A stretch of 64,000 bases of DNA from Saccostrea cucullata (lineage: Eukaryota). The notes under the pieces were generated by a model, which was given only the letters and a program-made list of their open reading frames with translations, did no database searches and was not told where the DNA came from. Shown here one piece after another: positions 7,916-57,180 of the stretch (the first letter of the stretch is position 1; every line of letters starts with the position of its first letter). The stretch lies in NCBI RefSeq assembly GCF_032062105.1, contig NW_026931135.1:248001-312000 (forward strand), read 5' to 3'. A program made the position numbers and the translations under genes.

Positions 7916-8004
7916 GCACATTTATAAGAACATTTTCGTCTTTAGAAAGTATTCAGTACAATAAAGTTCCATCAATTTATTTTAAAAACATTTCTTTATT
8001 ACAG

Positions 8005-27213: not shown

Positions 27214-29494
27214 ATTTAGTACACGAACTATACATTCATCACGTGACTGTCCATCGATGGGACTAAACTTCATACAGTAGAGAGTTGGTTATGCTATGCT
27301 ATTTATATAAGTATTCAAGTTCTGTGATAATTAAACAGCTTGATTAAAATTAATTCATTTTTTTTTTAAAAATCCCCATTTTTTGCACGTTCTTTTTCCG
27401 TTGATTTCTCATAGTAGGCCTTAACAGTGCTGCTTACTTGGTTTTTTTGCACTCAAATTACGCAATTACACTCTTAGAAGTAAGAAACAAAGTGACCAAT
27501 TTATAGGATTCTCTAATTTTTTCACAAAATATGACAAGACATGCCACAAACGTATTATATTTCTAACGAGTATCATTTATCAATGCCAATATAGTAATAT
27601 CATTTTTTTCTTCTGTTCTTTTAAGGAAATGAGTTAAAATAAAATCCATTAGTGTTTAGTATTACTTTAACAGCAATATTTTTTCAAAGCAAAAATTCAA
27701 AAATTCATATTGCTTTAACCCAGTATATGCTTTCACATGGCAAAGATTTAAAGCATTTCTAGACAACTTGATATCAAAATGTCAATGCATTTTTTGTTTA
27801 TTTCTTAGAAATTTTGTATTTACCAGTGTTTATATATTCTGAAAAGAGGTATTGTGTAGTTTCTGAAATTTTAATTTAAGTTGCCATGGCAACGGAGTAT
27901 AGAATCATCCTGAAATTTCCATTTAATCAAGATAAGGTTTAATTGTGTTTTTTTTCTTTGCTAAGTTAAATATAATTTTATGTAACAAATATTTCAATAT
28001 TGTTTCAAATTTATGACCATGTTGTTCATTTTTAAGAAGAAAACAATTTTAAGCCTTTTTTTTGGGGGGGGGGGGATTGGTGAGTTTTAGATGTTATCAC
28101 CAAAATTTAGCATTCAACATTTACATGTTTCCACTGCAATGAAATTGATAATGGCAAAATCGCTAGAATAGTCACAAGGTTTAACTCGAGCTAGCAAAAA
28201 AAAAATGCTCCAACAAATAAAAAAAATTCTGAGTATTATTTTTTTGTAATTATTTCCTTTTTCTCCCGATGCAAGAATTTTTCCGATGTTTGCAGTATTA
28301 ACCAAATTATGAATATTTGTTTACAGTATACTCTATTTTCAAATAAAGTGCGTAGAAATATGTATATGCCATGAAAGGGGCTTAGAATGCAGTTCATATT
28401 GCTTTTATAATAGAATTGTAGTACTGATAATTTCAAGAACACAATAGATTATTCATTACATTCGCACTTTTGTCAGTCTCAAATAACGTAACTTCAAGCT
28501 TTTCATAAGTGTCTTATTTTTTAATCTTCTCGAATAAATGTTAATATAAAAGAGAGATTTATTGTTATTAAATTTGTAAAAGTTTTATTTTATTTATTTC
28601 ATTTTTTTTATTTACGTTTCGTGTTTGCTCCTTTTCCGATTAATACTGTTTCGATAGACCTTTGAGTTTAATAACGGGTCCTTATCTCCATTAGTTTTTC
28701 AACACTGACAATGCAGATTTTTAAACCTGTTATGACCTTCAAAACAATTGACCTGAAAATGTGCCGCCTATATATTTACAGCAATAATTTAAAAGACATT
28801 CGTGTGACATAGAGGCTCGCAATAAACAAATACCCAATACAGATGACAAGGAAAACACCAGAAAGAATTACCAAAGATATACGGAAAGTAAGTTTGTGCT
28901 TTTTTAATGTTATTCAGCTATAAAAGTGTTAAGTTTGCCAAGGATCTATTATGGATTATCCAAAAGTCAAGATCTATATTTTATATATATTATAAACAAT
29001 AGCTTCAAAACTATGTGAGGTATAAAGTTGAAACTATAACAGTTTATAATGGTTTAATGAAATGATTAACGATAAAAGTATCACGTGAAATGAAATTTAT
29101 AAACAAAATAGAAAACAATAAAGAATAGTATATTTAAAAAAATTGCATAATACAGTACTTTTAGTGAAAAGCCATATAATTACAAAAATAATATTTTTTC
29201 CTCAATGAAGGGCAAGTTGAACCTAAATGGTCTTTGAAAGGCTGTTATTGAAAGTGCGACATGTATAAGGACAATAACCTTATATACCCGCATTTGCAAT
29301 GTACTTTCGGTTTCAAATCTTAACATTTGGATAAAATAATTTGGTTAAAACCTATTAAGACGCTAGTGAATTCAAGCTTGCCCTTTATTGATTAACATAT
29401 CTTGAATCTGCACTGATGGATATCACTAAAATTACGGAATTGATTAGATGTATTTTTTTATTATATGCATTTTTAAAAAGAGTTCTTCTTGATA

Positions 29495-33730: not shown

Positions 33731-34051
33731 ACACGAAAATTACTGATAAATCTCCAGCCAAAAAAATATTTGAAGAAGAATTAAGACAGCAAACCTTCAA
33801 CGTTATTAAAAATATGGAAGTCCCGATCAGTGAGCACAATACAGATGAAGAAGATGAAGATGAAGAAAATTTCTATGAGAGTATAGAAGACTTCATAAGG
33901 GATGAAACCAAGGATAGAAAATTCAACAATATCGGCCCTTTTGTAGAAAAACTGGAATCAATAATAATAACATATGCCAATCAACGAGCACAAAAGGCTC
34001 AAATTTTAGCAAGATTTCTGCGTTTTATTTTGCGTCTAAAGAAACATTATA
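33731..34051 (+). CDS. Roc-COR-protease gene, first supported coding exon (acidic N-terminal region)
   Basis: ttttgcAG| ... CAT TAT A|GTGAGT; phase 1 joins 36960; first in-frame ATG at 33814; true start unresolved. Confidence 0.7.
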
Positions 34052-34624
34052 GTGAGTAACAATCATTGTATGACATGTAAAATGATTTAACCACTGAGTA
34101 GTTAACGCGGAAATTAGACGCATTATTTTGCTGGGCTGTTAAACAACCCACTCACCAATTTAAGTCGATAATTATATACACATGTAGCTATATGGTTTCT
34201 AATGCTATGCTATTTTACTTACGTAGCCATTTGTCACGAGACATGTTAAAATTAGAGGAAAATAAAATATGTACGGTTTCAAAGTTCGTAGATATACGGA
34301 AATATTTTTTAAATTTTTTACTATGAAATTGATCGTATTTTAGGACTAAGTCACTAACCCGGAAAGTGCTGGGGGCAAATTCCTCGTGCACGATAATAAT
34401 ATAAAATCTAGCCATCTTTTAAAAAAAACTCGTACATTGACATTATACACATTGTAATAATGTAAAATCATAGAAAAGATCAATGGCGCACAATCGGCTC
34501 CCAGCATTTTCCAAAATAGTAGAGCTACATGTTTTTAAAAATCATAATTTATAAATTAGTCGATATCATTAAACTTTTTCAGATCTTCAAGGGTTTGTAC
34601 CTGTGATGGCAGGACATTTATGAG

Positions 34625-34770
34625 CAAACCGGTCAGCAGGGGATGCTTACTCCTCCATAGCACCTGATCCCACCTCTGATGTCTCGGGGGTCCGTGTTTG
34701 CTCTGCTCTCATTTTGTATTGTTTTATGGACTTTGATATTGAATACTGTTTGTTATCACCATATCCTTCC
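34625..34770 (+). mobile_element. Penelope-like element 3' end fragment
   Basis: ACCGGTCAGCAGGGGATGCTTACTCCTCC..CCATATCCTTC matches ~48037-48180. Confidence 0.8.
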
Positions 34771-34786
34771 ATTTATATAGTGCATA

Positions 34787-35840
34787 CGAGGGGTGTTAGA
34801 AAAGTTCGCGGACAAGTTCTATTGTGAGCGCGCTATTTCCACGAAACCGGTCAAACTTTTCAGATGAAATCATAACCTATTTTCCAATAAATATTCAAAA
34901 CTTTGGTGCTCTCCGGTGATCATTGAAAAATATATAGCTGTTTTATTTTGATAAAACTTGCTTCACGGAGCATGCTACATTTTGGCACGTTTACATCACA
35001 AAGACTCTTTATCAAAATTAAAAATTGCACAATTGTAGCGCAAAGAGATTTGTGATATTTTACCTGTCGCTAAAGTATTCATGAAACGTCACTTGGAGAA
35101 ATTTTGAATCAAATTGGAGGTTATATGACTGGTTTATAACCATTTATAAATGATCAACGCGTAAAAACACAGCCAAAAATCGGGACGTCATTGAGCGTCA
35201 TGGAGCACTGCACTACGTAAAAATTATGTGTGCAGACAGGAAAATGCCTATAAAGAGATTAAAATGTTCAAGATGCTGCCGGGAATTTCCTACACATACA
35301 AAGGACAAAAGTTTTCAAATGGTTTATAAGAATGTAAGGATTAAGATTTTGAATGATTAACTCCATCGATACTTCAATACCCCCTTATTGCATGGATGTT
35401 GTGCCTATATGGTTTTGTATAGTTTCCATACCTGACGGATTAACTGCATAGACTTTTTTTTAAAGATCTCAATATAATATCCGAATCAGCACAAAAGACA
35501 TTATAGTAGAGAAGTAGCATGTCTTGATATAGATATTCAATTTTAGAGTAGAAAAAAGATAAGAAAAACATGAAAAAATGAAAGATTTAATGAACTGCGA
35601 CAAAGCTTAACGGGTTGAAATCTGGTTGTCACGTCGCCTTACGTCATGTGATTGCTCCGTGAATCCCATGACCTCATAGTAAAAATCGTTGTAAATTTTC
35701 AAGATTTTAGTAAATGGACCGGATTTTTTATATACTAATAAACAAAATGTAGAAATCTATGCAGACATAGGTCATACTTCACAGTACACAATAGATTTTC
35801 CGTAATTCAATGTGTCCGCGAACTTTTCTAACAACCCTCG
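34787..35840. mobile_element. Mariner-type MITE, family A copy 2 (inverted relative to 2426-3492)
   Basis: TA|CGAGGGGTGTTAGAAAAGTTCGCGGACA ... TGTCCGCGAACTTTTCTAACAACCCTCG|TA. Confidence 0.92.
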
Positions 35841-36624
35841 TACATGTACATGCGGCTTTCTGTGGCTTTATATAAGGCTTCAACAATTTATTTATCAAGG
35901 CAGGAATTTGACTTAGCTTTAGTCAATTCAAGATTTTATTTTATTTTAAATTTTCAAAAGTATTCATATTGAAACAGCTTTTGTGCAAAATTTTATGTTT
36001 GATAAGAGCAAAACCGTTTAATCCCTTACTGTTCAGTGCATGTTGCTCCCTTTTCCCACTAGTTTTGACGTTTAGTGCTCTGGCTAGACAACCCTTTGTC
36101 TCATGATAAAATATCTTCGTAAAAGTTTCTCAGATTTAGCAAACCCTTAACTTGCATTATTTAAATGAAATGTACGTGTATTTGGGTTAGAGAATTTTTT
36201 CTAAAGAACTGAACAAGTTCCTTGTTTTGATTTTCTGACACTTCGCCTCGGTCAATTCGCCTCAGTCAATATGATTATTTTTTCTGGTGTATAACAAAGC
36301 ATATTCGACACCAAAAGAATCCATAATTGTATTGTATCTACATAAATAAATTTAGGGATGCAAGCGATATGCTTTTTTCTTATTTCTGAAAAATTAAAAT
36401 ATAATTAAATTCGTGTGTTTTAGATCTGTTTTTAAGGGAAACTCAGGTCACATCATTGGACTTAATATTTTTTTTTTATTTTCTGAACAATATGATGCTC
36501 TAGCATTTCTAATTAAATTATTTTGGATTATAATTTCATATTTTTGCTCAAAACTAATCCAGTTTTTATCATATACTTGTAAGCAATGATATAGCATTCA
36601 TTTATATAAGTCTTATTATTGTAC

Positions 36625-36846
36625 ATTATATTTATACACTGAAATGACGATGGATTTTTTTCCGTTATTCCCTGATTATGACAAGGAGCACACGGCGGGT
36701 GTGACCGGTCGGCAGGTGATGCTCACTCTTCAAAGGCACGTTATCCCACCTCTGGTGTTTCGGGGGTCCGTGTTTGCGCTTCTCTTATTTTGTATTGTTT
36801 TATTGACTTTGAGATTGAATACTGTTCTTTATCTCCATATCCTTCA
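36625..36846 (+). mobile_element. Penelope-like element 3' UTR fragment
   Basis: Matches 47960-48180. Confidence 0.85.
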
Positions 36847-36959
36847 TTGTACAAAAAAGACTTTAAAAATATTAACTGTGTCTGTGTCAAGCCCCCTTTG
36901 TTTATGAGGAAAAATCATTCTTTCTAGGTCTTTTTGACATAACTTTTTATTTCACATAG

Positions 36960-37196
36960 TTACAAGCCTCATGGATACAGATACAATTGTTATCGATGAG
37001 TTGAAGAAGTTTTTGAAGAAGAAGATAACTGTTTCCCATGCCAGAGGAATACTTGTTGGATGTGCTGATGCTGGAAAAACAACATTACTAAAGCGATTAA
37101 AAGGGCAGTTTCAAATAGGCAATGAGATTACAGAACCAACCAGGGGATTGGAGGTCCACCAGCATTTGTTTCTTGTCAGAAATGGAGTTTTGGAAG
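36960..37196 (+). CDS. Roc-COR-protease gene exon: Roc P-loop (G1) and G2
   Basis: catAG|TT ACA; ARGILVGCADAGKTTLLKRL; EPTRGLEV; GAA G|GTtaag. Confidence 0.9.
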
Positions 37197-38189
37197 GTTA
37201 AGAAGATTTTTCTGATAGTATGCATAACACATAGCACATGTATCGCAGTGTTCTATTCCACACCAAAAAAAATTACGAATAATCCTAAAATTACACCACT
37301 CTTTAATTTTTTATCTAAAAAAAGTTTTTTTTTAAATAATTAGTCACAATATAATAAAGAAATATGAAATAATGTTATGATAGAAAAAAAAATTTTTGGA
37401 ACTTAGATTTTGTTGTAGGATGGCGGATAGTTTAAGTGTCACGGACATATAACAGTTCTTTTCAAATTGGATTTTTTTAGAGTTTAATTGGGATATGAAA
37501 TTTAGTCAGTCACGTGATCAAATATCATAGTATATTTGATCACGCACCAACTTCATGTCACATACAATGAAACTCTAAAAATGATATCTTACTTCTTATA
37601 TTTATATTTTCTAATTTTATTCGTGTGACATGGAAAATTATTATATGATTGAATAATTTCCATCTCTCTGATTGGCTGCGATCCAACTATGTTAGAAAAA
37701 TACTACGTTGTATTGACCAGCACGTGATGTTCCAGGTCAATACAAAGATTTATTTCCTCTACATTGATCTATAAATAGATTGGGAAATTCCAAATTGATA
37801 CAAATTGTTTTGGAAAGCTATTTAAACGACTATGGTTTTTATTGTATGTGAACAAAACAAAAGCGAATATATATTTTAGGGTGAGGGTGGTAAGAGAGGA
37901 TGATGGGTCCTTTTACGTACTGAACAGCAATATTTTTTTTACTTTTTGGCAGTCAGTTTTCCCTGATTATACTCCTTCCTTTCAAAATCTATCCTATAAA
38001 AAAAGACTGACATTATAAATATTTTTCAGTGCAACTAAAATTTATTTAAAAAACATTTCAAATTGATACGACTGGTAATTTAAAGTTTATCTACATTTTA
38101 ATTCTGCTTCTCTCTTGTATTTGACTTGGACTTAATTAAATGCAAACAAGTAATGAGCTGTATCTTTTTATCAGTGAATCGTATGATAA

Positions 38190-38905
38190 ATCAATTATTG
38201 CTGTTTTTGAGGTCAATACTATACAATTATTGACTTTTGATGAGGTCTACTCGTGACTATACAGACCTGGTCAGGTATTGGTTGACCGAGGCTACTCGTG
38301 ACTATACAGACCAGGTCTGTATAGTCACGAGTAGACCGAATTCAAAAGTCAATAACTGTTTTATTAAACGATGAGGAGTTTTACAACACTGCTGACTCTT
38401 TCATTCTTGTCTCCATCAAATATAAACATCCATAATGTAAAGTGTAATTACACTTTTTACATGTTGATATACTTCAACAGCTAAACAAATATTAGTTAAA
38501 AAGTTAAAAACAATATTAATAAACAATAAATACTCAACCATTTACTTTCAAAAAGTTCTTAATCTCCTTGGTAATGGCGTCTGACATGTTTATATTCACA
38601 CCAGCACATGCTTTTAAACACGCAATCTGATTGGTCGAAAAAGCTGTAAGCAAATATATGGTTGGTCGAGAGGGAAAACCCGAATAAACCTCCCAGAACG
38701 TCATTTGAGGTGAACTCACTCTAAGGTACACACCAGTAAATGGCGTCTAGACCAATCAGAGAGCACCAAAATTCCTTATCATTTAATAAAATGATTTAAC
38801 CATCTTCGAAGTACAATATTCACCTCGCCCTTCGGGCTCGGTGAATATTGTACTCCTCAAATGGCTAAATCATTGTATTGACCTCAAAAACAGCAATAAT
38901 TGTAT
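38190..38905. mobile_element. Foldback-type element with nested palindromic MITE
   Basis: CAATTATTGCTGTTTTTGAGGTCAATAC / GTATTGACCTCAAAAACAGCAATAATTG; internal hairpins at 38240-38365 and 38786-38880. Confidence 0.6.
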
Positions 38906-39364
38906 AATAGTCACTATTTAGACATTGTTATGGAAATGCAACATAACGTAACTACGACGACATGTGACGTCACAATTCGAACTTTCAAAATGGCTCATGC
39001 AGTATTCTTTCAAATATGCAAGAAAATCTGATCTTATGACCAACTGAATGTCTAGAAAATTGAATTTCAATTTCATTAGAAGCAAATTGTAAATTGTTTA
39101 CATACAAAAAAACAAGTAAAGAATTCCCCCCTACAGCTTTCGGTATCTTTGTGGGTGAGATGTCATTTTTATGACATATTGTCTCAGATATGAACGCTCT
39201 ATCATATGTCATTTAGAAACTATCACCGAAGTAGGATTTTTTAAAAATAAGATCAATCGTGAAGGTTAAGGATATTGGGTCACAAATCATAGCATGCTTG
39301 GAAATATCTTATCACAGACCTGCACATGTCAAATATGAAAGCCATATCTCTTCTCAATAAAATG

Positions 39365-40152
39365 AACAATATGTGTTTGTGAAACACTGATGACCCCGTA
39401 TGGCAACATAGCGAAGATTAAACTTGTCTTGAATGCAAATTAAATATATTAATACCATAGGGTTTTTTTTTAATTAAAAGTAGGTCAGACTCTAAGGTCA
39501 ATATGATTCTTGATATCTTATGATAGATCCTGTCACACGGATTAAAAATGTGAAAAATAAAAGCCATAGCCCTAACTCTTTAAAAGTTTTGGCCAAGGTT
39601 CGCTTTGTAAAAGTAAGTTAAACTCCAAGGTCAAGGTTAAAGGTTCAAAGTTCTTTGTATCAAATTAAAGGTCTTCTCAAAAGGATTACATATGTGAAGT
39701 ATGAAAGCCCTATCCCTTACCGGTCAAAAGTTATGGCCAAAGATAAAGTTTTTTCACAAGCACAAAAATCTTCAAGGTCAAGGTCAATAGGTCACGGTTG
39801 TTTGTATCAATGAAAGGCCTTGCAACAGGGCATAGATATGTGAAATATAAAATTCCTAGTATCTACCATTCAAAAGTTATGTCCAAAGTAAAAGTTTGGA
39901 ATTTTGTGTAAAGGTTCGTCAAACTTCAAGGTCAAGGTCAAAAGGTCAAACTTGATGGTATATAAAGAAAGATCTTGTCACAAGAAATACACATGTGAAA
40001 TATGAAAGACATAGCCCCACTTCATTAAAAGTTATGGACAAGGTTAAAGTTTTTGTGACGGACGGACAGCTAGACAGACTGATCGACAGACGGTTATACG
40101 GACAGACAAATGAGATTTAATGTCCCCTCACTTTCGCCAAAGCGGGGGACAA
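39365..40152 (-). mobile_element. Helentron/HINE carrying ~166-bp satellite-like tandem monomers
   Basis: Terminal hairpin TGTGTTTGTGAAACAC, GACG/GACA microsatellite, palindrome near 40125-40150; AAGGTCAAGGTCA monomers ~150-165 bp apart; reverse homolog at 58640-59550. Confidence 0.8.
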
Positions 40153-40346
40153 TACTTTTTATTTATGTCAATAAGAATTATCTTTCTTATCAGCGTATCA
40201 ACGAATCTTAATGTGCAGCAGATTCCGGGCTGCTTAAACATGACCAACATTTTCTGAAACGCTTAAGAAGGGAGAAATAGACTTTTTATTGTTTTTTATT
40301 TCTAGTTTCAGAAATCCATATAAGAAATAGATCACTCTAGGTTACA

Positions 40347-40765
40347 TTTTCAGCTCACTTGAGCCGAAAGCTCAAGTGAGCTTTTCAGATCACATTTTGT
40401 CCGGTGTCCGTCTGTCTGTCCGTCTGACTGTCTGTACACATTTCACAAATGAAGAGCAACGCACTCATTCAAGGGGATATAATTGGGAATAAGTGAAAAT
40501 TTGGTGGCATGTTTTAAAAATCTTCTCAAGAACCACTGTGCCAGAAAAGCTGAAATTTATGTGGAAGCATCCTGGGGTAGCGTAGATTTAAGTTTGTTCA
40601 AATAATGACCACAAGGGAAAGGGGGGCACATGGCCGACCAAGGTTTTTACATAGAAATATATAGGAAACTTCTTTAAATATCATCTCAAGAATAGCAAAT
40701 ACAAGATTGGTCATGGGACTTATTTTGGATTTAAACCAATTTCTCCTTTTTCCTAGTCACAGTGT

Positions 40766-40798
<33 letters not shown>
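40347..40798 (+). mobile_element. HINE / pearl(CvA)-like element
   Basis: AGCTCACTTGAGC-CGAAA-GCTCAAGTGAGCT palindrome, GTCC/GTCT microsatellite, CAGGTGAGC subterminal IR, 3' hairpin GGCCCATGGGCC. Confidence 0.8.
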
Positions 40799-41083
40799 AT
40801 TTCTTGCTTTACATTCTCTCGACAACATACTTTGTTTTATGGTTCAAAGATATATAATTGCATTGTTATTATTTTTGCTAAGTGTAGATGTGTACATAAT
40901 AAATTTTTCATTATAAAAGTAACTTAGTCCAAACAGCTGTATCACGTCTCTCGTCGACAGACCTCAACCATCAGATCAATCTCGACGTTTTGCGTCGCTT
41001 TTGATCTCATGATCCGCTCCTGTCATCTCAGCGTAGTACGACTCTTTGGATCAAGTTACAGTTTTAATATTGTATATTAACAG

Positions 41084-41572
41084 TGACTAATGATGACTCA
41101 ACTTTGAAGACATTCATAAGGATTAACTCAGAAGATCTGAAACTAGACCCGAGCACTTCAGCGGATAACTCAAATATTAATGACAAGAAAGACAGCCAGG
41201 AACTGAAAAATGCAGATAAAGGCACTGAAGTAATTTATAGCAGGGAGGAAGAAAATTTAAAGACAAGAGGTACACCTGTGGAAGATACAGAAGAAGATAA
41301 TACAGTAGAAATAATGGCTAGTATTCTCTCCTCCAAAACAATGATTATGGGTGATTTTTTTCAAAAAATTTTGGCTGACAAAGAAACATTACCGACCGTA
41401 AGCATTGTAGATTTTGCTGGACAGTTTGCATATTATGCTTGTCATCAGATTTATATAACACCGAAGGCCTTCTTCATCCTTGTCTTAGACATGACTAAGA
41501 AGTTTTCAGATCCTGTCAGTAAAGACAAAGATAATCAAGAAGGATCTATTTTTTCCATGTGGACTTACAGAG
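41084..41572 (+). CDS. Roc-COR-protease gene exon: acidic insert plus Roc G3
   Basis: aacAG|TG ACT; IVDFAGQFAYYACHQIYITPKAFFILVLDM is a Roc signature; AGA G|GTaaaa. Confidence 0.9.
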
Positions 41573-41996
41573 GTAAAATTAATGTTCTCGTGATGTCAAA
41601 CATTCATGGCGTTAGAGAAATAGAGGTCATCTATCGTTGTACAATCTTTGATTATAAGTATTTTACCTTTTGATAATGAACTATCAGCTGGTCTTATAGA
41701 AAATTTAAATATAGGAATTTATTGAACATGTTACATGTATGCAAATTAGCTTCATGTATATACTGTTTCTAAAAAATCACTTCTGTTTGCATGATAGTTG
41801 TCAACTAGTGTTCTACCAAAACTGTGACGTAAAATTTAAATCGTCTATTTGCATCATCCGAAGTGGACATAACTTAATTACTAAAAGTCATATATAAATA
41901 ATCATTCTATGAGTTATTTATTTTTTTATAGAATACACAGCAACTAAAAGTTGAATTTTTTCATTGATTATTTGATCAGATGATGAAACTTTTTAA

Positions 41997-42240
41997 AAAC
42001 AAGATGTATGTATGAAATATTTTTGCCTCCGATTGGCAGCTTACGGCGACAGTTGAATTCTCTTAAATGTATGTCAAAGGCCAAAGATCAAGGTCAAAAG
42101 GTCACAATTGTGGATACCCAAAGGAGGGTTTTGTTACAAGGAATACATCGGTGATATAGATAAGGGCAAGGTAAAAGTTAACAGACTGACAGGGACAAAC
42201 AGAGATACAAAAATCAGACAGACAAAACAAAAACTTTATA
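41997..42240 (-). mobile_element. Truncated HINE of the 39365-40152 family
   Basis: AACAAGATGTATGTATGAAA end, one AAGGTCA monomer, ACAG microsatellite. Confidence 0.55.
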
Positions 42241-42397
42241 ATGTCGGGATCTTTTGATCCGAGGCATAAAGTTTCAGACTTATAGCATTTAAGTTCAATT
42301 TCGGGAAGGGGGGGGGGGTAGATAAATAGATAAAAAGGAGACTTATATTACAGCTTTGAAAACGCTTTTTACTCTTAGATAAGATTAATAGTCTCAT

Positions 42398-42640
42398 ATG
42401 CAACACACGGGGATGACGAACAGTATTCAAGATCAAAATCAATAAATTATTACAAAATAGGAGCAGAGCAAACACAGACCTCCAAAAAATCAGATGTGGC
42501 ACCAAGTGTCATAGAGGATTGAGCATCCCCTGCCGACCGGTCACACCCGCCAGTGCCCCTTGTCATGATCGGAAAATAACGGAAAAATCCGTTGTCACTT
42601 TGATATATAGATAATGGGCTAACAATTAGTATGAAAAACG
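42398..42640 (-). mobile_element. Penelope-like element 3' fragment
   Basis: Reverse complement of ~47935-48175 (GAGCATCCCCTGCCGACCGGTCACACCCGCC). Confidence 0.8.
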
Positions 42641-43679
42641 TAGACCCATCAGTTTTTGACTCAGTGATAAATTGTATTTGCTGAAAAGTATAGAAATTAT
42701 TAATCTGTTACAAATTTTAAATTCATCTTATTGACCGAACACTAATGCTAAGCCATTAATATACAAGTATCAACAATTTTGCTAAGAGTCAAAGTTTTGC
42801 AAATTCTTTAATCGATATAATGACCTTATTTGCAGATACGAATTATCGTTAGGGGGATGTTGAATGTTTTTTTTATACAAAGGGATATACTGTTATTTTA
42901 ACACTGAGTTGTTCAAGGATTTCACTGCTTACAAATTTCAATTCATGACCCGTGTGGGCAGGGTGAGGCCATAATGGCCAATATATTTTTTGCTTAGAAA
43001 TATATTGGAAATAATTTTTAAATCTTCTTCTCGAGAACAGCAAAGCCGTGATTCCAATTTTTAACCCGGGGATACATTGGGACTTAATGGTGGATCAAAG
43101 TTTCACATGAAAAGTAAAGAAAAACATCATTATCTTAAGAACATAGAAGCTATGTTTATTCATATTGACATGAAAGCATCCTCATTTTAACTGCAGTGAA
43201 GATTCGTATTTGTTCAAATCATGCCTCTTGGGGTATTTAGGGAGGGGCTCCGATTGGGTATCAAATTTATACAAAGTAATGTGTAGGGAAAACAATTTTA
43301 AAACCTTCTTAGCATAAAGAATTTAAATGTCAAGGCATGTTTGCACGATCTAACCCTTTAGTATACATGTTAAGTAAATTTCCAAAAAACAGATTTTAAT
43401 GTCAAGAAAAGGGTTACAAATAGTTATAGAAGATAAAAAATGTGAAAGATTCTCTTAAAACAATATTTCTCTCATAATTTCGAGTTTTATTAAATCAATA
43501 ATGTTTTAACTTTCCTATATTTCATAACTAACATAATTTTGTAATAATAAATTTGAAAAATGATGAAGTAAAACTTTTTCTAGACTTTTGTAATAATATT
43601 ACAAACCAGTAGATATCATATGTAATATGAACCCATTGTCTGTTTGTCCTATTAATATATATTTAAGTTTTTCTTTTAG

Positions 43680-43777
43680 ATTATTTGAAATTTTGGATTA
43701 CCTCAATCAAGACATTTGGCGGCAAAAAGGCACCAGTGTTTGTTATTGTCACTCATGCAGAGAACAAATCTACAAAT
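43680..43777 (+). CDS. Roc-COR-protease gene exon: Roc G4
   Basis: Not in the ORF track; ttttAG|AT..DYLKFWITSIKTFGGKKAPVFVIVTHAENKSTN|GTAAGT; phases 1 and 0 fit neighbours. Confidence 0.88.
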
Positions 43778-44201
43778 GTAAGTATCAAGCTTATAATTAT
43801 ACTTGAATTTCAATGAAAATTAATAGGACAAAATGGCGGTAAAAGATTTTGTTTTGAACGTAGATTAGAAAAAATAAAATCTAATCATTCTCAGAAAGTC
43901 GTGACTACTACACAGAGGCTAGACTTTAGGTTAAAAAATTCGTTCATTCGTTATTGAATAGAGAGAAGTGTAATTCTTTCCTGAAAAATTGTTCAAAGCA
44001 TCGTGGACTTGTGACCGTGGGACCTTTATCATGTTTGTTTACAGCAATGATTTCTATAGAAAAATATATGTCCTCTTTTTAAATTATTTTTTATACTTAA
44101 AAACATGAAATTCTCTATTCATTAAAATGTAATCATTACGTAGAGCATAACACATATCCGATCCGTAAATAAATGTTTCTTTACTTTTTTATTGTATCTA
44201 G

Positions 44202-45422
44202 GAAATAGAGAAATTCTTCACGGAACTTTGGGATACAGTTCCAGCTGAAGAAACAGACTGGTTAAGTGACTCTCTGAATGATAGAGAATATGCAGTAGGT
44301 CTGCTTGAACTAAATGACAATTCGAAACAAATGCTGAATTCTATAAAAGAGTCCATCGTAGAACTTTTTAAAAACGAAATCAATACCAAAATGGAATTGC
44401 CTTCTTCCTGGGCTCTAATGGAACAATTATTGTATGATGGAGATTGGAAGGTTTTGTCACTGGCTGATATTTGGAGGCTCAACTCATCTCTTCCCCATGA
44501 ATACAAAATTAAAAGTAATGGAGAAATGTCTGATTTTCTTAAGTGTTTCAATGATAATGGTCTTATTTTGTATTGTGAAGAGAAGAATTTGAGAGAACAT
44601 GCAATACTGGACATCCAATGGTTTGCCAATGCCTTTAGTAAGATTATTGCTGATGAAAACCATATCACTAAAGATTGTAGAAGGAGTTTAAGAAGGGAGT
44701 GGAAATCCTTCAACAAAACAGGGGAACTTAAAGAAAAAGTGGTAGATGCTCTGTGGAAAGATGAACCCTCATACCTGAAACACAAAAGTGAAATTATGTC
44801 TTATATGGAGAAACTTCAAATGCTGGTACCTTTGGAATCCTTTGGGGCTTTATCGGAAGGTGGTATGACATGGTATGTCCCTTGTATGAACAAAAAACAG
44901 TTTAAAGCTGATTTCTGTGAAGAAAAATGGGACCGCTCATCCATTTTGTGCTTTCGATTCACTTCTTTTGCCATATTTGAGTTCTACAGATTGGTGGCTT
45001 ATTGCATAGGTGTTCTAAGTTGGAAAGTTTCAACAGACGGAGATAATGAGGGAAATCTATGCCTTTATCAAACAGCAGCCGTGTTTGATTGCAAAGAACA
45101 CACAGTAGCTATCGGAATATGTAATGATGAAATTCAATTGCAAGTTTTGCGAATTAAACCATTGACTGTAGAAAAAGAAGTATCAAGTAAAATCGGACAC
45201 TCAATCGAAAATGCTGTAGAAATATTGACAAAAACCTTCACTGACACAAAAAAGTTCCAAAAAGGGATTAAATGCCAGAAAAATATTTTTTATGAGAATG
45301 ATACATCGTTCACCCTTGTAAGTGAACTCTCCAAAATCAAGACTGAAAAAACTCAGTGCGCATGTCGACTTCAAGAAAAACATATCATAACTTTGCAAAA
45401 GACTCTGGGTTTCTGGGAGAAG
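44202..45422 (+). CDS. Roc-COR-protease gene exon: end of Roc plus COR domain
   Basis: 407 codons open; ELPSSWALME, FLKCFNDNGLILY, ILDIQWFANAFSKII, WYVPCM, FYRLVAYC COR-type motifs; GAG AAG|GTaaat. Confidence 0.9.
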
Positions 45423-45715
45423 GTAAATATTAAATTATATTGGTATGAATTGAATAACCAATTAAAAAAATTTTCGACCTGTGTGGTAATTTTGGATTGT
45501 TTAATAAAGTACTTTATTAACCTGCAAGGAATTTAAGAAAGACTGGGATAAAAGCAATGTTTTAATTTTTTCTGTATTTTATTATATAGCATTTTGTTAA
45601 TTTTCTCTTGTCGACAGTCTGTTTGAGGACTGCCTGTCTAATTATCATTTGTAATTATTTTATCTCGTCAAAAAGCATTTGGTGTCTTATGTTAAAAAAA
45701 CTCACCGCTTTTAAG

Positions 45716-45923
45716 AAAAGAGAAGGATCACCAAGAAAAAGTTGTACCTATCCCTTCTCCAAAAGAGCCTCTCAGAAGGACGCACTGACAAGTCATTTAA
45801 AGGCCGAAGTCATCAGAAGTGTAGGACTTATTTATGTTGATGGACATCCGGCAGGAACAGGATTTAGGGTAGGAGAAAAGTACATCATGACCTGTCTACA
45901 TATCATCGAAAGGATTGTTCAAG
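45716..45923 (+). CDS. Roc-COR-protease gene exon: protease N-half with catalytic His
   Basis: ttttaAG|AAA phase 0; RSVGLIYVDGHPAGTGFRVGEKYIMTCLHII; CAA G|GTacgt. Confidence 0.85.
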
Positions 45924-46329
45924 GTACGTCGTTTTGAGCAGAAAAATTTTCTTTGATATAATCAAATAAAAAGAATACTCTATTAAAGACAACTATAAGA
46001 ATGTTTAAACTGCATTTAGTTTTTTTACCTCTCAATTTAGGTAAGATGTTTCAAGGATTCTGATTTAAAAAATGATAGTCGATTGGGTGTTTGTTTGAAG
46101 AGGGGATGTCCTACCCAAACGAAAAATTGCATACCAGTTCGATTATTTTCGAAACTTGTCATTTTGCTAAATGCATTACAATGTTAAATGAGTCGTAGCA
46201 AAAAAATCAACAAGTTCTAATTATGGGCAAAGATTTGTTTTCCCTTTTTCCTTCCCAAAATTCTCTTTTAATTAAAATAACCATCATTAAACTACTGGGG
46301 TAGTTATTTTCAAATTGGAAATGGATTAT

Positions 46330-48181
46330 TCTTAGATCACTTATTTTAAAAGGTCCTAAATATAGGGAACTCCGATCCTTCAACTGGCGTCGGAATTTCA
46401 TAAATATTATGGATTCTGTTGAAAATTACGCCAGACGATGGGCTAAATATGAAAAAGAAGACATTGACACCTTATCAGAATGGATTAAATGTATCAGGTC
46501 CATGTTAAAGTCACGTATTAAAAGATTGAGGGGCAAAATGAAAACCATCTATACTTCTGTGTTCAATAAACCAGAAGTGAAAAAAGAATTAGATAGATTA
46601 CACGATCAGTACGTACTGGTTCCTGCCGACATAGCAGGTAACAACATTGTCTTCGTTTGTAAGGCTCATTATATAAATTGCATTCTAGAAGAACTTGGAT
46701 TTAACTCTACAAGTGGTAATCCTACTTATACATATACTTCTCTTTCTACGGAATTCTTCAAAATCACCTGTCAGTTTTGAATACTTTTAATATTCCACAG
46801 AGCCAAAATGAATTTGAACTACCTTATATATATTGGATTCCGAAACTTCATAAGAATCCTTACAAACAAAGATACATTGCAGGTTCCAGTAAATGTTCAA
46901 CCAAGCCTCTTTCGTTACTTCTCACTAAAATATTGACAGTAGTGAAGGAAAAACCTTAAGAGTACTGTACAACTATATATTCAAGAAGTGGTGTAAATCA
47001 GATGTGGATATTAAAAAATTCTAAAGAACTTTTGGACAATTTGAAATCACAAGACTTTACAAAAATCAACAGCTTAAAAACTTACGACTTTTCAACTTTA
47101 TACACAACAATTCCCCACGACAAATTGAAATCCAGGCTTTTTGATATCATTGACAGCTGCTTCTTCAACAAAAATGGAACTTGTAAGTTTACTTACCTCG
47201 TCATTGGTCATTTGAAAAATTATTTTGTTAAAACAGATTCTGATTGCACACATAAGTACTCTGAAATTGACATCAAGAAGATGCTTGAGTTTCTGATTGA
47301 CAATATCTATGTGGTTTTTGGAGACAAGGTATTCCAACAATCTATTGGAATTCCCATAGGTACAAATTGTGCTCCGCTATTAGCAGACTTATTTTTATAT
47401 TCATATGAAGCAGAATTTATGGAGAATCTTTTACGTGAAAGAAGAAAACACTTGCTGTGGCCTTCAACTCGACATTTAGATATATCGACGACGTATTGTC
47501 AATTAATAATGATAATTTCCATTCCTACGTCGACACGATATATCCTGCTGAGCTTGAGATAAAAGATACCACAGAGTCCGACACTTCTGCTTCATACTTT
47601 GATATTTTACTTGAAAAAGACACTAATAGTAATCTAACAGCCAAGCTATATGATAAACATGATGACTTTAACTATTCTATCGTCAACTTCCCTTACTTAT
47701 GCAGCAATATACCTTCATCACCTGCATACGGAGTATTTATATCTCAGTTGATTCGATACGCAAGAGCATGCTCTACGTATGAACAATTTCTTAAACGAGG
47801 TAAATTATTGACAAGCAAGTTGATGAAACAAGAATATCAACAGTCTCGTTTAAAGTCATCATTTCGTAAATTCTATGGTCGATACAATGACCTTGTCAGC
47901 AAATACAATTTATCATTGAATGAAATGCTGACTGACGTTTTTCATACCAATTGTTAGTCCATTATTTATACACTGAATTGACCACGGATTTTTTCCGTTA
48001 TTTCCTGATTATAACAACGAGCACACGGCGGGTGTGACCGGTCGGCAGGGGATGCTCACTCCTCCATGGCACCTGATCCCATCTCTGATGTTTCGGAGGT
48101 CCGTGTTTGCTCTGCTCTTATTTTGTATATTTGTTTAATGGACGTTGAGATTGAATACTGTTCGTTATTTCCATATCCCTT
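46330..48181 (+). mobile_element. 5'-truncated Penelope-like retroelement (Naiad-like RT), pseudogenised, in the last intron of the Roc-COR-protease gene
   Basis: KGPKYRE, YWIPKLHK, YDFSTLYT, GIPIGTNCAPLLADLFL, FRYIDD, KLYDK.DDF motifs across 4 ORF pieces (2 frameshifts, stop at 46957); RT ends at 47957 with no C-terminal GIY-YIG. Confidence 0.9.
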
Positions 48182-49085
48182 TTTTTAATTAAAATTCTAC
48201 ATAAGAAACATAAAATTATATATGAATATGGGGCTTAATTATTCCCTGTTTATCTATTTATGAAAATGTGTACATTTCAGGAATAGGGTAATTTAAATTA
48301 ACAAATGTAATCTACTGTATTTAAAGACAAAACTAACTCCCACAGGCATTTACTTTTTTGTGACATACACATGTATTTGAAATTGATAACAAAAATCATT
48401 TCACAAAAAACATCCTATGTGGAAAAAAAATCAGTATACTAATAACGAAGCAAATATTTTTTCTAAGGGAATTCAAAAGTGATAAAATTGTTGCTCCTGA
48501 CCACAATCTGCATTATTTCAGTTTGTAAAATACAAAAATACTTTTGAAATAGGATAATGATAAGAGAACTAGGATCCATAGGCAAAAGTGATTCATATTA
48601 TAAAATTCACATGAGATGGGAATGAAACACAGGGCACGTGAAATTTATGTGAAACTTGCAAATTTGACAAAATTTTCATATGAATTTTACATAAAGAGTA
48701 TATTGCATAAATATCGTGCAAAGAAATTAAAAGGTCACATGAAAGTTCTAAAAAAAAGAATTATGTAAATATCGAACATACCAATTCACATGATTTTCGC
48801 ATGAAACTTATTTTACATTATTTTTGAAAACTTCAGATAAAGAGAAATTCACATTAAAATCATGTAAGCCACTTTTTCCTGTAAACATTTCATATTTATC
48901 TGATCTGCATTACTCGTTTTATTGATCTTCACATACATTGATTAGTAGGACTAATTTTATCTTGGAAAAAAATATGAAATGTAGTTTGCTTAGAGACTAA
49001 AATACATGTAAGAACAATATTGACGGAATAGACATAGATGATATGTAATCCAAAAAACAAATGCATGATTCTATTTGTTTAACAG

Positions 49086-49735
49086 GTCCCCTAGACTTTA
49101 TCCGATGTGAGAGGGTTTACATACAGTTCGAGAGGATGGTTCACCTCCAGAACACAGACCAGAGCAAAATATTCCTAATTGAGCCGACCCTTGTGTACAA
49201 ACATCAAGAATTTGATGTTGCTGTATTGGAATTAAAAAAACAGGGAATCCAGTTTCCTCAGCCTTTAACTTTGTTCAGTGCAAATTGCCTCCCTTCTGAA
49301 GAGGTTCACCTTATTGGCCATCCAGGCGGTGTTCAAATGAAGGAAGACAGTGAAGTATATCTTAGCGTTATTGAGCCAAACAATGATGTTGACAAATATA
49401 TCAAGGAGCTTAGTGAATGGAGCATGGAAAAGTTCATGAACAATGTAGATTATTACTCAAGGTTGCGTGAATTGCCAAGAAAAATTTTATTTCACACAAC
49501 GTTTGACCAAGGATCATCAGGGTCCCCTGGCATTTTGATCAGGAATCACAAACCCTGTGTTGCTCTTATTGTGGCTGGTGGGGTTCCCTCTTTTTATTAT
49601 GAAGATGGGGTATATGTGGAACCGGAGAAGCGGGTTGAGTTTGGATATGCCTTGAGAGATGTATTTGATGAAATGCAGACAAATGAAATAAACAAAAAAT
49701 TATCATCAGAAATTTTCAAAGAATGGATCTCTTAG
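49086..49735 (+). CDS. Roc-COR-protease gene terminal exon: FAM111-like trypsin-2 protease (Asp, Ser)
   Basis: aacAG|GT CCC phase 1; EFDVAVLEL (Asp), LIGHPGG, FHTTFDQGSSGSPG (Ser), VEFG; TAG 49733-49735. Confidence 0.9.
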
Positions 49736-51614
49736 AATGTACACATAGGTGTGTTTAAAGTTAAAATGAAATAATCATCAAATGTGCAATTATGTGTAAC
49801 AATATTTCCTTATTGAAAATAGTTGATTTTCTCTTTTTCCGAAAAGAATCTAAAGCATCCAACATTTTACAAAACTTGGACTCTATTTTACTTCAATCGC
49901 GGGAAAGTTTCAATGAATAATACCTTAAGATTGTTTAATATGGACTATGTATATTTCAATTAACGTTTGTGACATAAAAATAACAATCATACTTTTACTT
50001 GAAATTTGTACTTGTAATGTGTATTTTAATGTATTCCCAATTTTGCCAAGATTGTTGAAAGACCCTAGTTGTGGACGAATAATTTAAAGTTTGCTAATGA
50101 CTTAAATCCTTGCATATTCTTTTGATTTGTACATTTACCATTATATTGTAATCATTTTTACCATTATTTCAATGCCTATTCATTTTTTTTAAATATTCAT
50201 GTAGTTAGAATATCCTCATTTTTAACATTTGGTGCAGTGCTTTAAGATGTTTTATTTGATTTCCTCAATACGATATCAAAACTCATTTCTTTTATATAAC
50301 TTTAATCAATTTATGATATAATTCAGTAATTTCGTATTACTTTCAGTTTCATTAAAAGTGTCCGCATGCCGTAAAGATCACCGTACTCTCTGTTTTGCTA
50401 TTCAAAGCCCGATTATCGAAAAGAAATTCACGTCAACTTCACAAAAGTTCAATAATATTTTAAAGCATAATTTTTGGAAATAAAAAATGATATGAGAAAA
50501 TACTATATAAGGCTCTTAGACGTACGTAAATTTTTATCTTTCAAATATTATCATAACCAAAATGCTTAATAATTTTTATTACAGAATAATACATAAAACT
50601 ACTCTTTTAAAAAAGCAGTTACCAGGAAAGTGGTACATGTAATTAAAGGAATACTCTTAGTAGCTTACGGTCACAAACTCACCGTGTTATACCTTACAAA
50701 ATTCTATTGTAATAAAATTATGAAACTTATTATGCTTTCTATCATCAATGTTTGCATTCCATGATTATGTGTGGAAATAATCTTCTTTTGTAAGAATAAA
50801 TTTCATTTCTTGTACACATGCATGAAATAAAGTGTAAATTCTATTTTATGATATTCATTTTATGGTAAGTTACTAGTTAGTCATCTCTGCACGATATGAA
50901 TATTTGCAATAAACAGAGAGGAAAAATCTGTAAGAAACGTAATAAATATTTTCTTCAGGAATGGAATTTAAATGTTCTTTAGAATAAGAACATTAACATA
51001 TCACGAAATTATTTTAAAAAGTTCCTCTAAAAATGCAGCAGAAAGCATCTAGAATGAAACATAAACAACAAGACAGGAACATGATTTTACTAAAAAATAT
51101 CCTATAGAAAAGAAAAAAACATAAACACAGAATGAAATATGTCCATTCTAAAACAAGGGAATATAAATATTCTAGTAAATTGGCTTAAAAATCAAAATGC
51201 ATTTCCAATGAAGTATTTTTAATAACGTAAATATAACAGATGAACACTAATAAGTGATTTATTCATGCCAACATATTTATAACAAAATGCGACATCATTT
51301 TCAGTACACAGTGCACTGAAGTACTTTCAATCACGGCTAAGAAACTTTGAAAAATTGGCTTACAATGTTACATAGTCTTTAGAGAAAGGCCTTTTTTTCA
51401 ACAATTGATGTTAAAAATGAGTACTGCAGCTTTATGCAATAAACAAATGGCAATTCCCATTTGATAAATTTTATACTTATATTTTGCAAATATTTCAAAA
51501 AATACAAGCACAATAACTATGATTATGTTTAACAGAATGCTTAATAACGTTTTAATCATTCCATTGATTATCAATCTTTAGCCAGCATTTGATTGGAGCA
51601 CTACTTGATTGACA

Positions 51615-53076: not shown

Positions 53077-53880
53077 CTGTCAACAAGAAAACAAGGTAAT
53101 TAAAATAATTATTTCTAATACTGTTTAACCTACCTGTTAAACATTTTTACACTTTTAGCATTGGTGGTATTAGATTTTTAATCTAGTTGTTTAGGATGAA
53201 ATATTATGTCTTTGTTATGTAGCAAGAACTTGCTGAATTTTGTAATAAAGAACTCAATACTACTTTTAAAGGGTCAGGAAAAATGACCAAAAGAAGGAGA
53301 GATATCATCTAATATATGTGAATGGGTGGAAGTACGTTTACAAACAAGAAGAAGAGGGGACAGACTGAAAAACAAGACAAGTGGACACCAACTACATTTC
53401 AAAACTCCGAATAGAGGATTCAAAAGCTCTGATATACCAGTGTGTAAACAAGATTAACACTCACCACTGGTGTAAGAAAAAGATTTTATGTTCTTAAAAT
53501 GTTACTTTCAAATTGAAAGAATAATTAGTTGAAAATATCCATCAAAGAAAGGTTTCAATAATAAGTGAATGCATAGACCTTAGGCTCAAAGGCATTAAAA
53601 TGACACAACCAAAAAGGAAGACGTAAAAACTAAAAGACTTCACCTAGCTCTCTTTACAATGACAAAGCTACAGTAATAGTTCAAGTGAATGCAAAAAAGG
53701 TGAAATGGAATATACATTGTATGGAAATAAGAATGCATAATACCTATATATCATTTTTTTTAAAATCCTATTATCAAAGTGGTGTTTTAAATATACCCTA
53801 TAGGCTAGTAGAATATCTGTTCTCTCCAATGATTGAAAATCACACCAGATTGTTTCTGAACCCTTCCAACATCTTCCTAC

Positions 53881-54017
53881 CTGAAGATTATAGTCCTGGA
53901 GGATTTTAACCAATGAGTCCCTTAATCCTGGGATTTCCATTCCGTTCTGAATTTGAGGGATCAGTCTGATGGGATCCACATGAGTCCCAATGTTGTGAAG
54001 TAATCCTTTGATAAAAG
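53881..54017 (-). CDS. VPS41: VPS41 exon (FIKGLLHNIGTHVDP..LQDYNLQ)
   Basis: gacAG|CT..CAG|GTagg. Confidence 0.92.
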
Positions 54018-54317
54018 CTGTCAACAAAAAGATTTCAGAGTTTGATTGTTTTGAGTCCTTTAACATCTTTAGTAAATGTATAGGCAACAGAAAAAACTTG
54101 ATATTTTGGGTTGGAATTATTAGGGTGGCATTTTTATTTGATGAATTCTGTCCATAGTTCAAATATTGAGATGCAGACATTTTCTTTAACTCTTTGCGGG
54201 TATTTATATGTAAATGATATACAGTTGGGTCTTGAACAGCATGCAGTAACTGAAAAGGACTACAGGTTCCTGAATTTTGGATTAAAGCTGTGGCTATAAT
54301 AAGGGGCGTAGTCTTAC

Positions 54318-54458
54318 ATGGTTTGTCTATGCTGAATTTAATGAGATCCGCCCACAGCTCCTCGTTATTCTTGTCCTTACAGAACTCAATAGCCTGGGTA
54401 ACGTCCTTCAACTTTGTTGTAATCAAGGTCAAGGCCTTCTTCAGATCTCCCATACGAC
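54318..54458 (-). CDS. VPS41: VPS41 exon (RMGDLKKAL..SIDKP)
   Basis: ttAG|GT CGT ATG..CCA T|GTaag. Confidence 0.92.
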
Positions 54459-54668
54459 CTAATTAAAGAAGAAAAGGAATATAATCTCAAAAGGGTTAAT
54501 TTCAGATGATTTTTATACCCCCCGCTTGAAAAGAGGGAGGGTATATAGTAATCGTTATTTCCGTCCGTCCGTCCGTCCGTCTGTTAAGCTTTGGGGTACC
54601 CATCTCTTATCCGCAACTCCTCTTAAACCACTGAGTGAAATTTCAAAAAAACTTTCACAGAATCTATA

Positions 54669-56674
54669 TACTGTAAACCAATTATTATACGCGTCATTTT
54701 GTATTCGCGACTGACCGCCAGGGAACTTATCCGCGACGATTTATTTCCGCGAACGAGTGGTCACATTTTTTTTTATTTCCACGAGTATTTTGAATCAAAT
54801 AAAAATTTTATATCCGCCCATAAACTACGTAAAATGGTAGCGTGAGGTCTGCTTACGCATTATTCAAGACATTGTTTGCATTGCGTCCATTTAAAATCTT
54901 ATATCCGCCCCTAAAGTAGATGAAATGTTTACCATGAGTATACTTCATTCGCATTTTCACAACGCTCAAACGAAAATTATCGGGGGAAAATCTTGGAGAT
55001 TAAAATTGATTTAAAACTGTCAATTGTAAAAGTGCCTCATACTAATTGGGTAATCGACGCTTTCTAAGATCTACACAGCCAAGGGGCAATTATTATAAAT
55101 GATTGGGACAGAGCAGGACTTGGCCATAATTAGATATAATGATTAACCAGGCTATCTCTGTCTCGTCTGTAACAATAAATGAACAATAATAACACAAGCT
55201 GAAATAATTATTGACATTTTAATCATTTTTAGACAAATGGTTTTAGATTTGTCATTCGTTTTTATTTTTTCTGAATGTTTGTAATTAAATTTCAGCTGCT
55301 TCTTGTACACTAACTGTAAAGTTCTTCCGTGATTACTCGTTGAACCGTCGGGATCGGTATTGTAAAAAGGGCAAATAACTCTAAATAAATCACAAGTAAC
55401 AGCTTTTTAAAAAGCTTGCCTGACTAAATCAATCAATATCTGCATGAGGAGTGAAAAACCTTTTGAGCAATTACTTTTGTTTTTGAGAAACTTGCATAAA
55501 AGAAATCTTGATTTAACTGTTAGAAGAATCATCTCTACACTGCATATACTAAAGAGTTTGTATTCTGTGGGGGTTTTCTGCAAATGAAGTGATCTGCCCT
55601 TGGACTTAATTGATTTCGAGCTACTTATATTGTAACACTTATAATAAAATATGTTACGAAATTATGCATTGTCAACATTCTAAAAATTGATATAATTAAA
55701 GACACATTTTGTTGGAGTGTATTTTCTCCACTGAAGTATACAGAAGTTATGTGTGTTAATCATTATTTTTTTCATAAAAGGGGGGGGGGGGTAGTCCCAC
55801 TATCATATAATGAGAATGAAATAAGTAAATTCGCTACTTAGACCTGTGTAGAAATATAAAGATTTTGCACTTGTTTCTTATTTATTGTGTGCATCAGAAC
55901 AGAGACATATAATTGTTCATGCATCTGGAGACCATGACTTTGTTGAAATGAGTTTATTATTATCGGACTAGTCCATTTATGGAATAAACCAACCGCGGGA
56001 TCGGGAAACAAATTCGAAAAATCATTTCTTTTTTAGTGTTGCATGTCTGTATACTGTTATATTATACGATATGCTGTTTAAAAGAATGAGATAAAACATT
56101 CATTTGTAGACAGAATTTCTGAAACATCAGAAGGAGGTTAAAAGAATAAATTCTAATTCCATGGAAGTTAAAACATCCATTCATACAATTGAACAATCCA
56201 AGGAAAAGGCGCGAAGAAAGCAGTGACATTTGGCGCGAAAAGAGCGATTACCCCTTTAGTAGAATATAAATGGACTGATCCAGTAGTATAGAAATGCAGA
56301 AAAAAGGATATACGGACATGTTGAAAAGGTGAATCACATCGAATAATCGTTCCATGCAAAAAGATTAAAGGAAGTAAAGGCTACAGTATGTTGCATCAGT
56401 AATGTCATTATTTTTTCTGAAAGTCGTTTCTTTTAAAATGCAGGTTAAGAATTTCAATGTAAATCAGCTTGCACAAAATCTAGCTCTCTAGGTATGATCT
56501 ATTAGTTTCGGATCTAGCAAATATCAATCCTTATACAGCCTGACGCCATGACGTCAGGCAATGATATGGGAATATAATGCACAACTGGTTCGCGACGATA
56601 AATATCCGCGAGCAGAGGTTACTCGCGGAACTCGCGGATATTTATCGCACGCGTATAATACTTGGTTTACAGTA
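54669..56674. mobile_element. TA-flanked TIR element nested in the HINE
   Basis: TACTGTAAACCAA ... TTGGTTTACAGTA; CGCG-rich subtermini. Confidence 0.8.
55401..56562 (+). mobile_element. Innermost nested element, homolog of 17891-24472
   Basis: Same start (AGCTTGCCTGAC) and same end (GCCTGACGCCATGACGTCAGGCAAT). Confidence 0.65.
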
Positions 56675-57180
56675 ACATAATGCCATTGTGCACCTCCTAT
56701 TTCATTTTTTGATCCGACAAATAGTTTGGAATTCCCGGCCACCGCAAAACATGGACTTATGCAATTATAATCATATGGGAGGCGGGGGGTATTATTTAGT
56801 GAGCTCATTGCTCACAGTACCTCTAGTTGTATTTGTTGTTATTGCATTTACAATTTAATTGTAGAAAGTGTGAATAGTTATTGAAATATATGCAGGACAT
56901 AAAGTTTGATGGACAAATTAGATAGTAGAAGATTGGAAGGACAGACGGAAATGGACAACACAAATACATATAGCTACTGACATGCATAAAACGTTCTTTC
57001 AGAGACCAAACCGGACCAAAATTGACTATGTAGGGTTAAGCGATGGCTAGACAGATAGACAAGATTATTGATAACTAGGTCACCCCCACCCCTCCAGCTT
57101 TGTGAAGGATAAAGTAAATTCAAGAATAAAGCTACAGACACAAACCTGGTCAGCCACCTGAATATTGTGTTTGAGAGGGG

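Follow-up and report, generated by a model that had tools for sequence, protein, structure and literature searches.

A Roc-COR GTPase joined to a FAM111-like serine protease in the oyster Saccostrea cucullata, with effector exchange at a phase-0 intron

Bacterial LRR-AP-GTPase-COR proteins end in one of at least 24 different C-terminal domains, trypsin and caspase among them, and are predicted to act as counter-invader systems (Kaur et al. 2021, PMC8195603). In Runella, a Roc-COR-CHAT protease has been shown to cleave gasdermin, in a text that makes no mention of GTP (Johnson et al., 10.1101/2021.06.07.447441). Binding of GTP leads to monomerisation of CtRoco (PMC11052575), and in the protease FAM111A dimerisation through helix alpha1 is required for substrate cleavage while autocleavage takes place at Phe334 (PMC10920703). 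Among molluscs, Roco-TIR and Roco-death proteins have been noted in Aplysia (PMC9334734). Expansions of HEPN_DZIP3 are also known in oysters. In this study, we analysed a stretch of 64,000 nucleotides from the oyster Saccostrea cucullata (assembly GCF_032062105.1, contig NW_026931135.1, positions 248,001 to 312,000, hereafter the window, in which all positions below are counted), focusing on a plus-strand gene that joins a Roc-COR GTPase to a FAM111-like serine protease, its relatives and the origin of its protease tail.

The seven exons proposed in an earlier note made from the letters of the window, whose positions are given below with the domains they encode, were all bounded by AG and GT, were each free of stops and agreed in phase exon by exon. 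The incoming phases of exons 1 to 7 are 1, 1, 1, 1, 0, 0 and 1, the split codons are sense codons, and an exon-by-exon count gives about 1073 codons. Exons were searched singly, and full-length work was carried out on the database proteins P0156 and P0003. The RefSeq model LOC134231541 (XP_062569486, uncharacterised, 752 aa) consists of the end of exon 3 plus exons 4-7, with identical sequence and the same junctions. The fusion of Roc-COR and protease is one real gene.

Transcript data bear on the two junctions around exon 6. The exon 6/7 junction was recovered in a contig of run X3, which skips 45924-49085 with GT-AG ends. For the joint 45422/45716, a 266-nucleotide RNA contig (depth 9.16) stops aligning at 45419, leaves no depth in the intron and places about 62 letters in the exon 6 bin, counted at 45769, and therefore spans exons 5 and 6; because the read alignment was dominated by a repeat in intron 6, this joint was read from depth tables, and the splice follows from depth arithmetic. 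The contig is about 95% identical to the window, so it comes from an allele or a very close paralog. That the COR exons and the protease exons are two neighbouring genes is thus largely refuted and has become extremely unlikely. Such a division could appeal to the COR-only read-through isoforms in RefSeq (P0126), to the read-through stop at 45536 in intron 5 of the window gene and to the absence of the 5/6 joint from the splice joints reported; however, the intron is 293 nucleotides long, in phase and joined by RefSeq, one RNA contig lies on both of its sides with the intron skipped, the order is kept at about 14 loci, and two Logan contigs contain, in single open reading frames (ORFs), a degenerate Roc and a COR-like region together with the FAM111-like protease of the window gene. 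Read-through of intron 5 (45423-45536) would give a short isoform that ends after COR without an effector, as RefSeq models for the paralog P0126, and such COR-only isoforms could act as decoys.

The first half of the protein was assigned to the Roco GTPases, as the earlier note had read it, by Pfam and by the fold match of a paralog model to bacterial Roco and LRRK. Roc starts in exon 2 (36960-37196), which holds the G1 P-loop (37058-37081) and G2 (37136-37147); exon 3 (41084-41572) encodes a variable acidic insertion within Roc followed by G3 DFAG (41410-41421), exon 4 (43680-43777) encodes G4 THAE (43751-43762), and exon 5 (44202-45422) encodes the end of Roc and the entire COR, terminating at FWEK in phase 0. 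Pfam detected COR-A in exon 5 above the cut-off (1e-10) and Roc in exons 2 and 3 below it (6e-5 in exon 3), because the domain is split over exons; Pfam searches of the exons and of full-length paralogs place COR directly after Roc. In the model of the full-length paralog P0003 from S. echinata (predicted local distance difference test, pLDDT, 83.5; predicted template modelling score, pTM, 0.64), Roc-COR matches C. tepidum Roco and LRRK1/2, with 6hlu and 3dpu among the fold matches besides LRRK, and the tail matches FAM111A. G1-G3 are canonical and intact, and G4 reads TH(A/T)E in the Saccostrea members checked, with Glu in place of the Asp of most GTPases; no G5 was identified. The protein thus shares the Roc-COR tandem with the Roco GTPases (C. 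tepidum Roco, LRRK1/2 and DAPK1), but it has no kinase or LRR, carries a large acidic insertion between G2 and G3, which is disordered in the P0003 model, and ends its G4 in Glu. The protease occupies the position of the kinase in LRRK2.

Exon 6 (45716-45923) encodes a linker with a conserved Phe (45755-45757), a helix resembling alpha1 of FAM111A (45779-45811) and the catalytic His (45899-45901), and exon 7 (49086-49735) encodes the remainder of a FAM111-like S1 protease with the catalytic Asp (49214-49216), the catalytic Ser (49517-49519), the Glu of an EFG motif (49637-49639), which aligns with E573 of FAM111A, and the stop codon. The Roc motifs G1 to G4 and the protease motifs TCLH, FDVAVL, LIGHP and GSSGSP listed in the earlier note were all found, and its FAM111-like protease with a full triad was borne out by structure comparison and by alignment of the triad to FAM111A. 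Pfam detected Trypsin_2 in exon 7 (2e-4); in a sequence search of solved structures FAM111A was the sole match (E 1e-11, about 23% identity). The protease model (pLDDT 93) gave FAM111A as its top six Foldseek matches, and comparison with FAM111A gave a VIA Z of 25.1 (root-mean-square deviation 3.0 over 240 residues including alpha1), the next fold reaching 20.1. Across 83 homologues the catalytic Asp is invariant and the Ser nearly so. Helix alpha1 is predicted in the model and superposes on that of FAM111A, and the positions of V347 and V351 are occupied by Ser and Ala. The linker Phe lies 14 residues past COR and is invariant in the close homologues covering the site (16 of 16); it precedes the SVG motif by 21 residues, compared with 22 for the autocleavage residue Phe334 of FAM111A.

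The protein resembles human FAM111A (PDB 8s9k, 8s9l) in its triad, IGHP, EFG and an upstream Phe in register, and differs from it in the Ser/Ala at V347/V351, in the lack of a detected PIP/UBL region and in its junction to Roc-COR, to which the protease is C-terminal. Pfam scans gave no UBL match, no PIP box was detected, and the region before the protease is Roc-COR. Judged from these features, it is best regarded as a Roco protein with a FAM111-like protease and not as a FAM111A orthologue; the protease tree, which bears on orthology with FAM111A/B, held no vertebrate sequences. A housekeeping role like that of FAM111A, in which the enzyme would clear protein obstacles at replication forks, would agree with FAM111A being the closest solved structure, but it is very unlikely given that PIP and UBL modules were not detected and that a repair gene would not be expected to show the strong expansion, tail shuffling and broken copies of this family.

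Compared with the bacterial systems of Kaur et al. (2021), the oyster family likewise combines a repeat sensor, Roc-COR and a C-terminal slot for many effectors, with several paralogs per genome bearing different tails; the effector varies among two protease subfamilies, HEPN, Death and a second Roc. In contrast to those systems, its genes are animal and intron-containing, its relatives carry an NHL propeller in place of the N-terminal LRR sensor, which was not found, and tails are swapped at a phase-0 intron. In the window copy itself no sensor was identified. By analogy, the window protein would work like the bacterial LRR-Roc-COR systems without being a member of them. Because its FAM111-like protease falls among mollusc-type homologues, the fusion more probably arose by convergence with the bacterial Roc-COR-trypsin proteins than by common descent with them. 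With the Runella Roc-COR-CHAT protein it shares the joining of Roc-COR to a protease; that protein, however, is a caspase-like Cys protease whose substrate is encoded adjacently, whereas the oyster enzyme is an S1 serine protease. The nearest relatives by COR are uncharacterised oyster Roc-COR-HEPN_DZIP3 genes in RefSeq, in which the exon structure is the same up to the FWEK junction and the tail is a predicted ribonuclease (RNase) instead of a protease. The earlier note knew of no characterised example of this architecture, which stands for animals and fails for bacteria, where Roc-COR-trypsin has been predicted and Roc-COR-CHAT tested. The literature searched, which left most subscription papers outside, held nothing on an animal Roc-COR-serine protease, on a tail-swapping family of this kind or on oyster FAM111. 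We regard the gene as a new animal variant of the bacterial design, with direct evidence of recent effector exchange, that appears undescribed in animals.

The exchange takes place at intron 5 (45423-45715), the phase-0 effector slot. HEPN_DZIP3 is the usual tail of the closest COR relatives (70-75% identity), and further tails found after COR are a death domain, a second Roc and a second protease subfamily only about 25% identical to the window protease; for COR copies at 70-73% identity the tails were taken from RefSeq proteins, not from genome DNA. The tails start directly past the FWEK-type motif, and in genes with readable DNA an intron lies at the same position in phase 0, preceding the HEPN exon in P0162 of S. 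echinata and the linker and protease exons in P0153. Tests on the COR tree used a careful subset of 25 rows, the first COR tree being a quick version. In this unrooted tree neither the protease-tailed genes (approximately unbiased test, p-AU 1e-123) nor the HEPN-tailed genes (p-AU 1e-104) form a clade; a single origin of all protease-tailed genes is thus rejected on this tree, and gain and loss of tails cannot be told apart because the tree has no root.

For the window gene itself, the protease exons are 87-91% identical to those of LOC134247029, whose COR is only 48% identical. The two genes stand together in the protease tree, and joining them in the COR tree was rejected (p-AU 2e-23). At the DNA level, similarity to that locus, the C19130 protease cassette, begins at 45488, inside intron 5, and runs into the 3' untranslated region (UTR) at 82-91% (91% over 49076-50386), compared with 65% for the COR exon, which places the recombination breakpoint at about 45423-45488. 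The probable 3' UTR (49736-50390, +), in which a hexamer scan found the earliest polyA-like signal at 50351, travelled with the cassette. The window gene is therefore a recent chimera whose tail recombined at intron 5, and tails in the family are exchanged at this one phase-0 intron. A further arrangement was seen in P0197 (LOC134277888, contig C10683), where a COR of the HEPN-rich clade is followed by the second, divergent protease subfamily; a pattern search did not find GxSG in this protease, and its activity is uncertain. Intron 6 holds a repeat (46331-48190) with reverse transcriptase-like ORFs, which lies outside the protein, has the very high read depth of a multi-copy element and shares 94% identity with a copy at the paralog locus L011.

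Genome searches were made on the 1.17-Gb assembly, in which the window contig is C13272. Exon 2 gave 175 matches and the COR of exon 5 more than 100 (627 candidates), and about 18 close protease exons were found. In this genome about 14 loci have exon 6, exon 7 or both lying behind COR on the same strand; part of this set probably consists of haplotigs, and stops or frameshifts occur in three of the loci. Roc-COR-protease models were also found in S. echinata and, as two genes, in the clam Mercenaria mercenaria. In the clam gene that was examined the introns differ, the join after COR is in phase 1 and the protease is a distant one, so that an independent fusion is indicated. The protease clade of the window gene also occurs in P0157, P0161, P0136 and P0159 (Logan), where its N-terminal partner is HEPN with Ig repeats, Ig alone or an unannotated domain. 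The ratio dN/dS is 0.11-0.27 over the COR and protease exons (exon 5, 0.11-0.27; exon 7, 0.14-0.24), so that both COR and protease are under purifying selection.

We propose that the protein is a cytosolic innate-immune or cell-death effector within a modular oyster Roco family, whose members would share a variable front end, usually an NHL propeller, a Roc-COR switch and an exchangeable C-terminal effector, here the FAM111-like serine protease. The nucleotide cycle of Roc would shift COR between monomer and dimer, and since the protease begins only 14 residues past the end of COR, the COR dimer could provide the pairing that orders a FAM111-type active site. The state of the switch would then govern proteolysis of a host death substrate or of a pathogen protein, and self-cleavage at the conserved linker Phe would free the protease or end the signal. 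The earlier note had Roc-COR switch the protease on through dimerisation; that idea is kept here, but activation by GTP through dimerising may be reversed, because GTP drives CtRoco to the monomer and the active state could accordingly be the GDP-bound or nucleotide-free dimer, triggered by hydrolysis or depletion of GTP instead of its binding. The presence of alpha1 with Ser and Ala at the dimer positions, together with the invariant linker Phe, fits dependence on an outside dimeriser, namely COR, plus self-release. HEPN, the death domain and a second Roc, the other tails, belong to families whose members work as dimers or by homotypic contacts. Expansion, pseudogenes and shuffling of tails are typical of immune gene families and therefore support the immune reading, in agreement with the earlier note as far as the pattern of expansion and turnover goes.

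Several points weigh against this proposal. FAM111A autocleaves without need of a dimer (PMC10920703), and the linker of P0003 is disordered in a model whose pTM is only 0.64, so a fixed packing of COR against protease is unsupported. With Glu for Asp in G4, specificity for GTP is not assured. The same protease clade stands behind Ig, HEPN-Ig and other front ends that lack a GTPase and can thus probably work without Roc-COR, and raw reads of two 2026 runs cover the COR exon less than once. Some of these points would suit an immune effector in which Roc-COR only localises or scaffolds, and the protease is released by its own cut at the linker Phe or forms dimers unaided, independently of nucleotide; the conserved autocleavage-like Phe, the dimer-independent autocleavage of FAM111A, the non-GTPase front ends and a linker that varies from 14 to 48 residues all agree with it. 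We nevertheless consider it unlikely, if worth serious attention, because G1-G4 are kept in the protease-tailed genes, COR is under purifying selection, and the repeated recruitment of protease tails suggests a useful coupling. An immune or cell-death effector with a protease gated by Roc-COR is the best explanation as a whole and is held with moderate confidence; for nucleotide-dependent control of the protease the balance is about even, and an immune or cell-death role of some kind, judged from the behaviour of the family, is the more probable part.

The 5' end is less certain than the rest of the gene. Exon 1 (33731-34051, +) is a phase 1-1 coding exon with good splice sites whose product is helical, acidic and without a known domain. 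Listed first among the exons in the earlier note, it begins in phase 1 without a start codon and must therefore be internal; it may be an N-terminal exon, and its membership is uncertain. None of its 33 other genome matches is close to a listed COR exon, it was not found in any family protein fetched, and neither Pfam nor an Atlas search gave a family for it. On three contigs a copy of the exon-1 family precedes a NAL1-type protease exon by 13-43 kb. Translation from an in-frame ATG in exon 2 (36971) would yield 963 aa. Relatives in the family mostly start with a single NHL-propeller exon, with or without B-boxes, joined in phase 1 to exon 2, and some models, such as P0003 and P0155, start at Roc. 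Between 11400 and 37000, a scan for coding exons further upstream gave no convincing candidate. The nearest NHL-propeller exon lies 31 kb upstream at 4606-5400 (+), shows an apparent deletion and has 42-53% identity with Roco paralogs at their N-termini; it was rejected as first exon because of an in-frame TGA and an intervening gene. An exon-like segment at 28782-28887 (+) has a good donor and stops in all three frames from its acceptor, and is possibly a 5' UTR exon.

It is conceivable, if rather improbable, that the family is functional but that the window gene, as a young chimera deprived of its NHL sensor exon, lacks part of its 5' end or is almost silent. The want of a certain first exon, the stop in the nearest NHL exon and the gene between, the start of the RefSeq model within exon 3, the very low read depth and the frameshift in the closest paralog, C9402, would agree with this. 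On the other hand, all exons are intact, the ATG at 36971 is in frame, P0003 and P0155 likewise begin at Roc, and spliced RNA of about 95% identity exists.

Two further genes were seen in the window. At 6468-11406 (+) lies a separate multi-exon serine protease gene with the motifs TCAH, DAA and GDSGS, which we take to be of the NAL1/Ssy5 type. It has about 30 close copies in the genome, several of them adjoining FAM111-like protease genes (C9402, C20609, C12524 and C17660), which suggests mixed clusters of intracellular proteases. A Vps41-like gene at 53668-58004 (-) contains an exon-like unit repeated in tandem around 57080-58004.

Taken further, and only tentatively, the results raise the possibility that bivalves independently built an NLR-like immune platform on a Roco GTPase, with a sensor, a Roc-COR nucleotide switch and plug-in effectors (protease, RNase or death domain) that paralogs are still exchanging at one intron, and with the protease form switched by COR dimerisation. 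If true, a FAM111-like protease switched in this way would be the first nucleotide-gated protease of such a kind in animals. Work on LRRK2 has yet to settle how the Roc-COR cycle governs an enzyme joined to it, and a natural fusion of about 960 residues with a simple fluorogenic read-out would allow a direct test. The finding would also carry over to animals a defence design that has so far been described in bacteria, place FAM111 proteases among immune effectors in evolutionary terms, and add to oyster immunity a candidate effector family with more than 100 COR exon matches.

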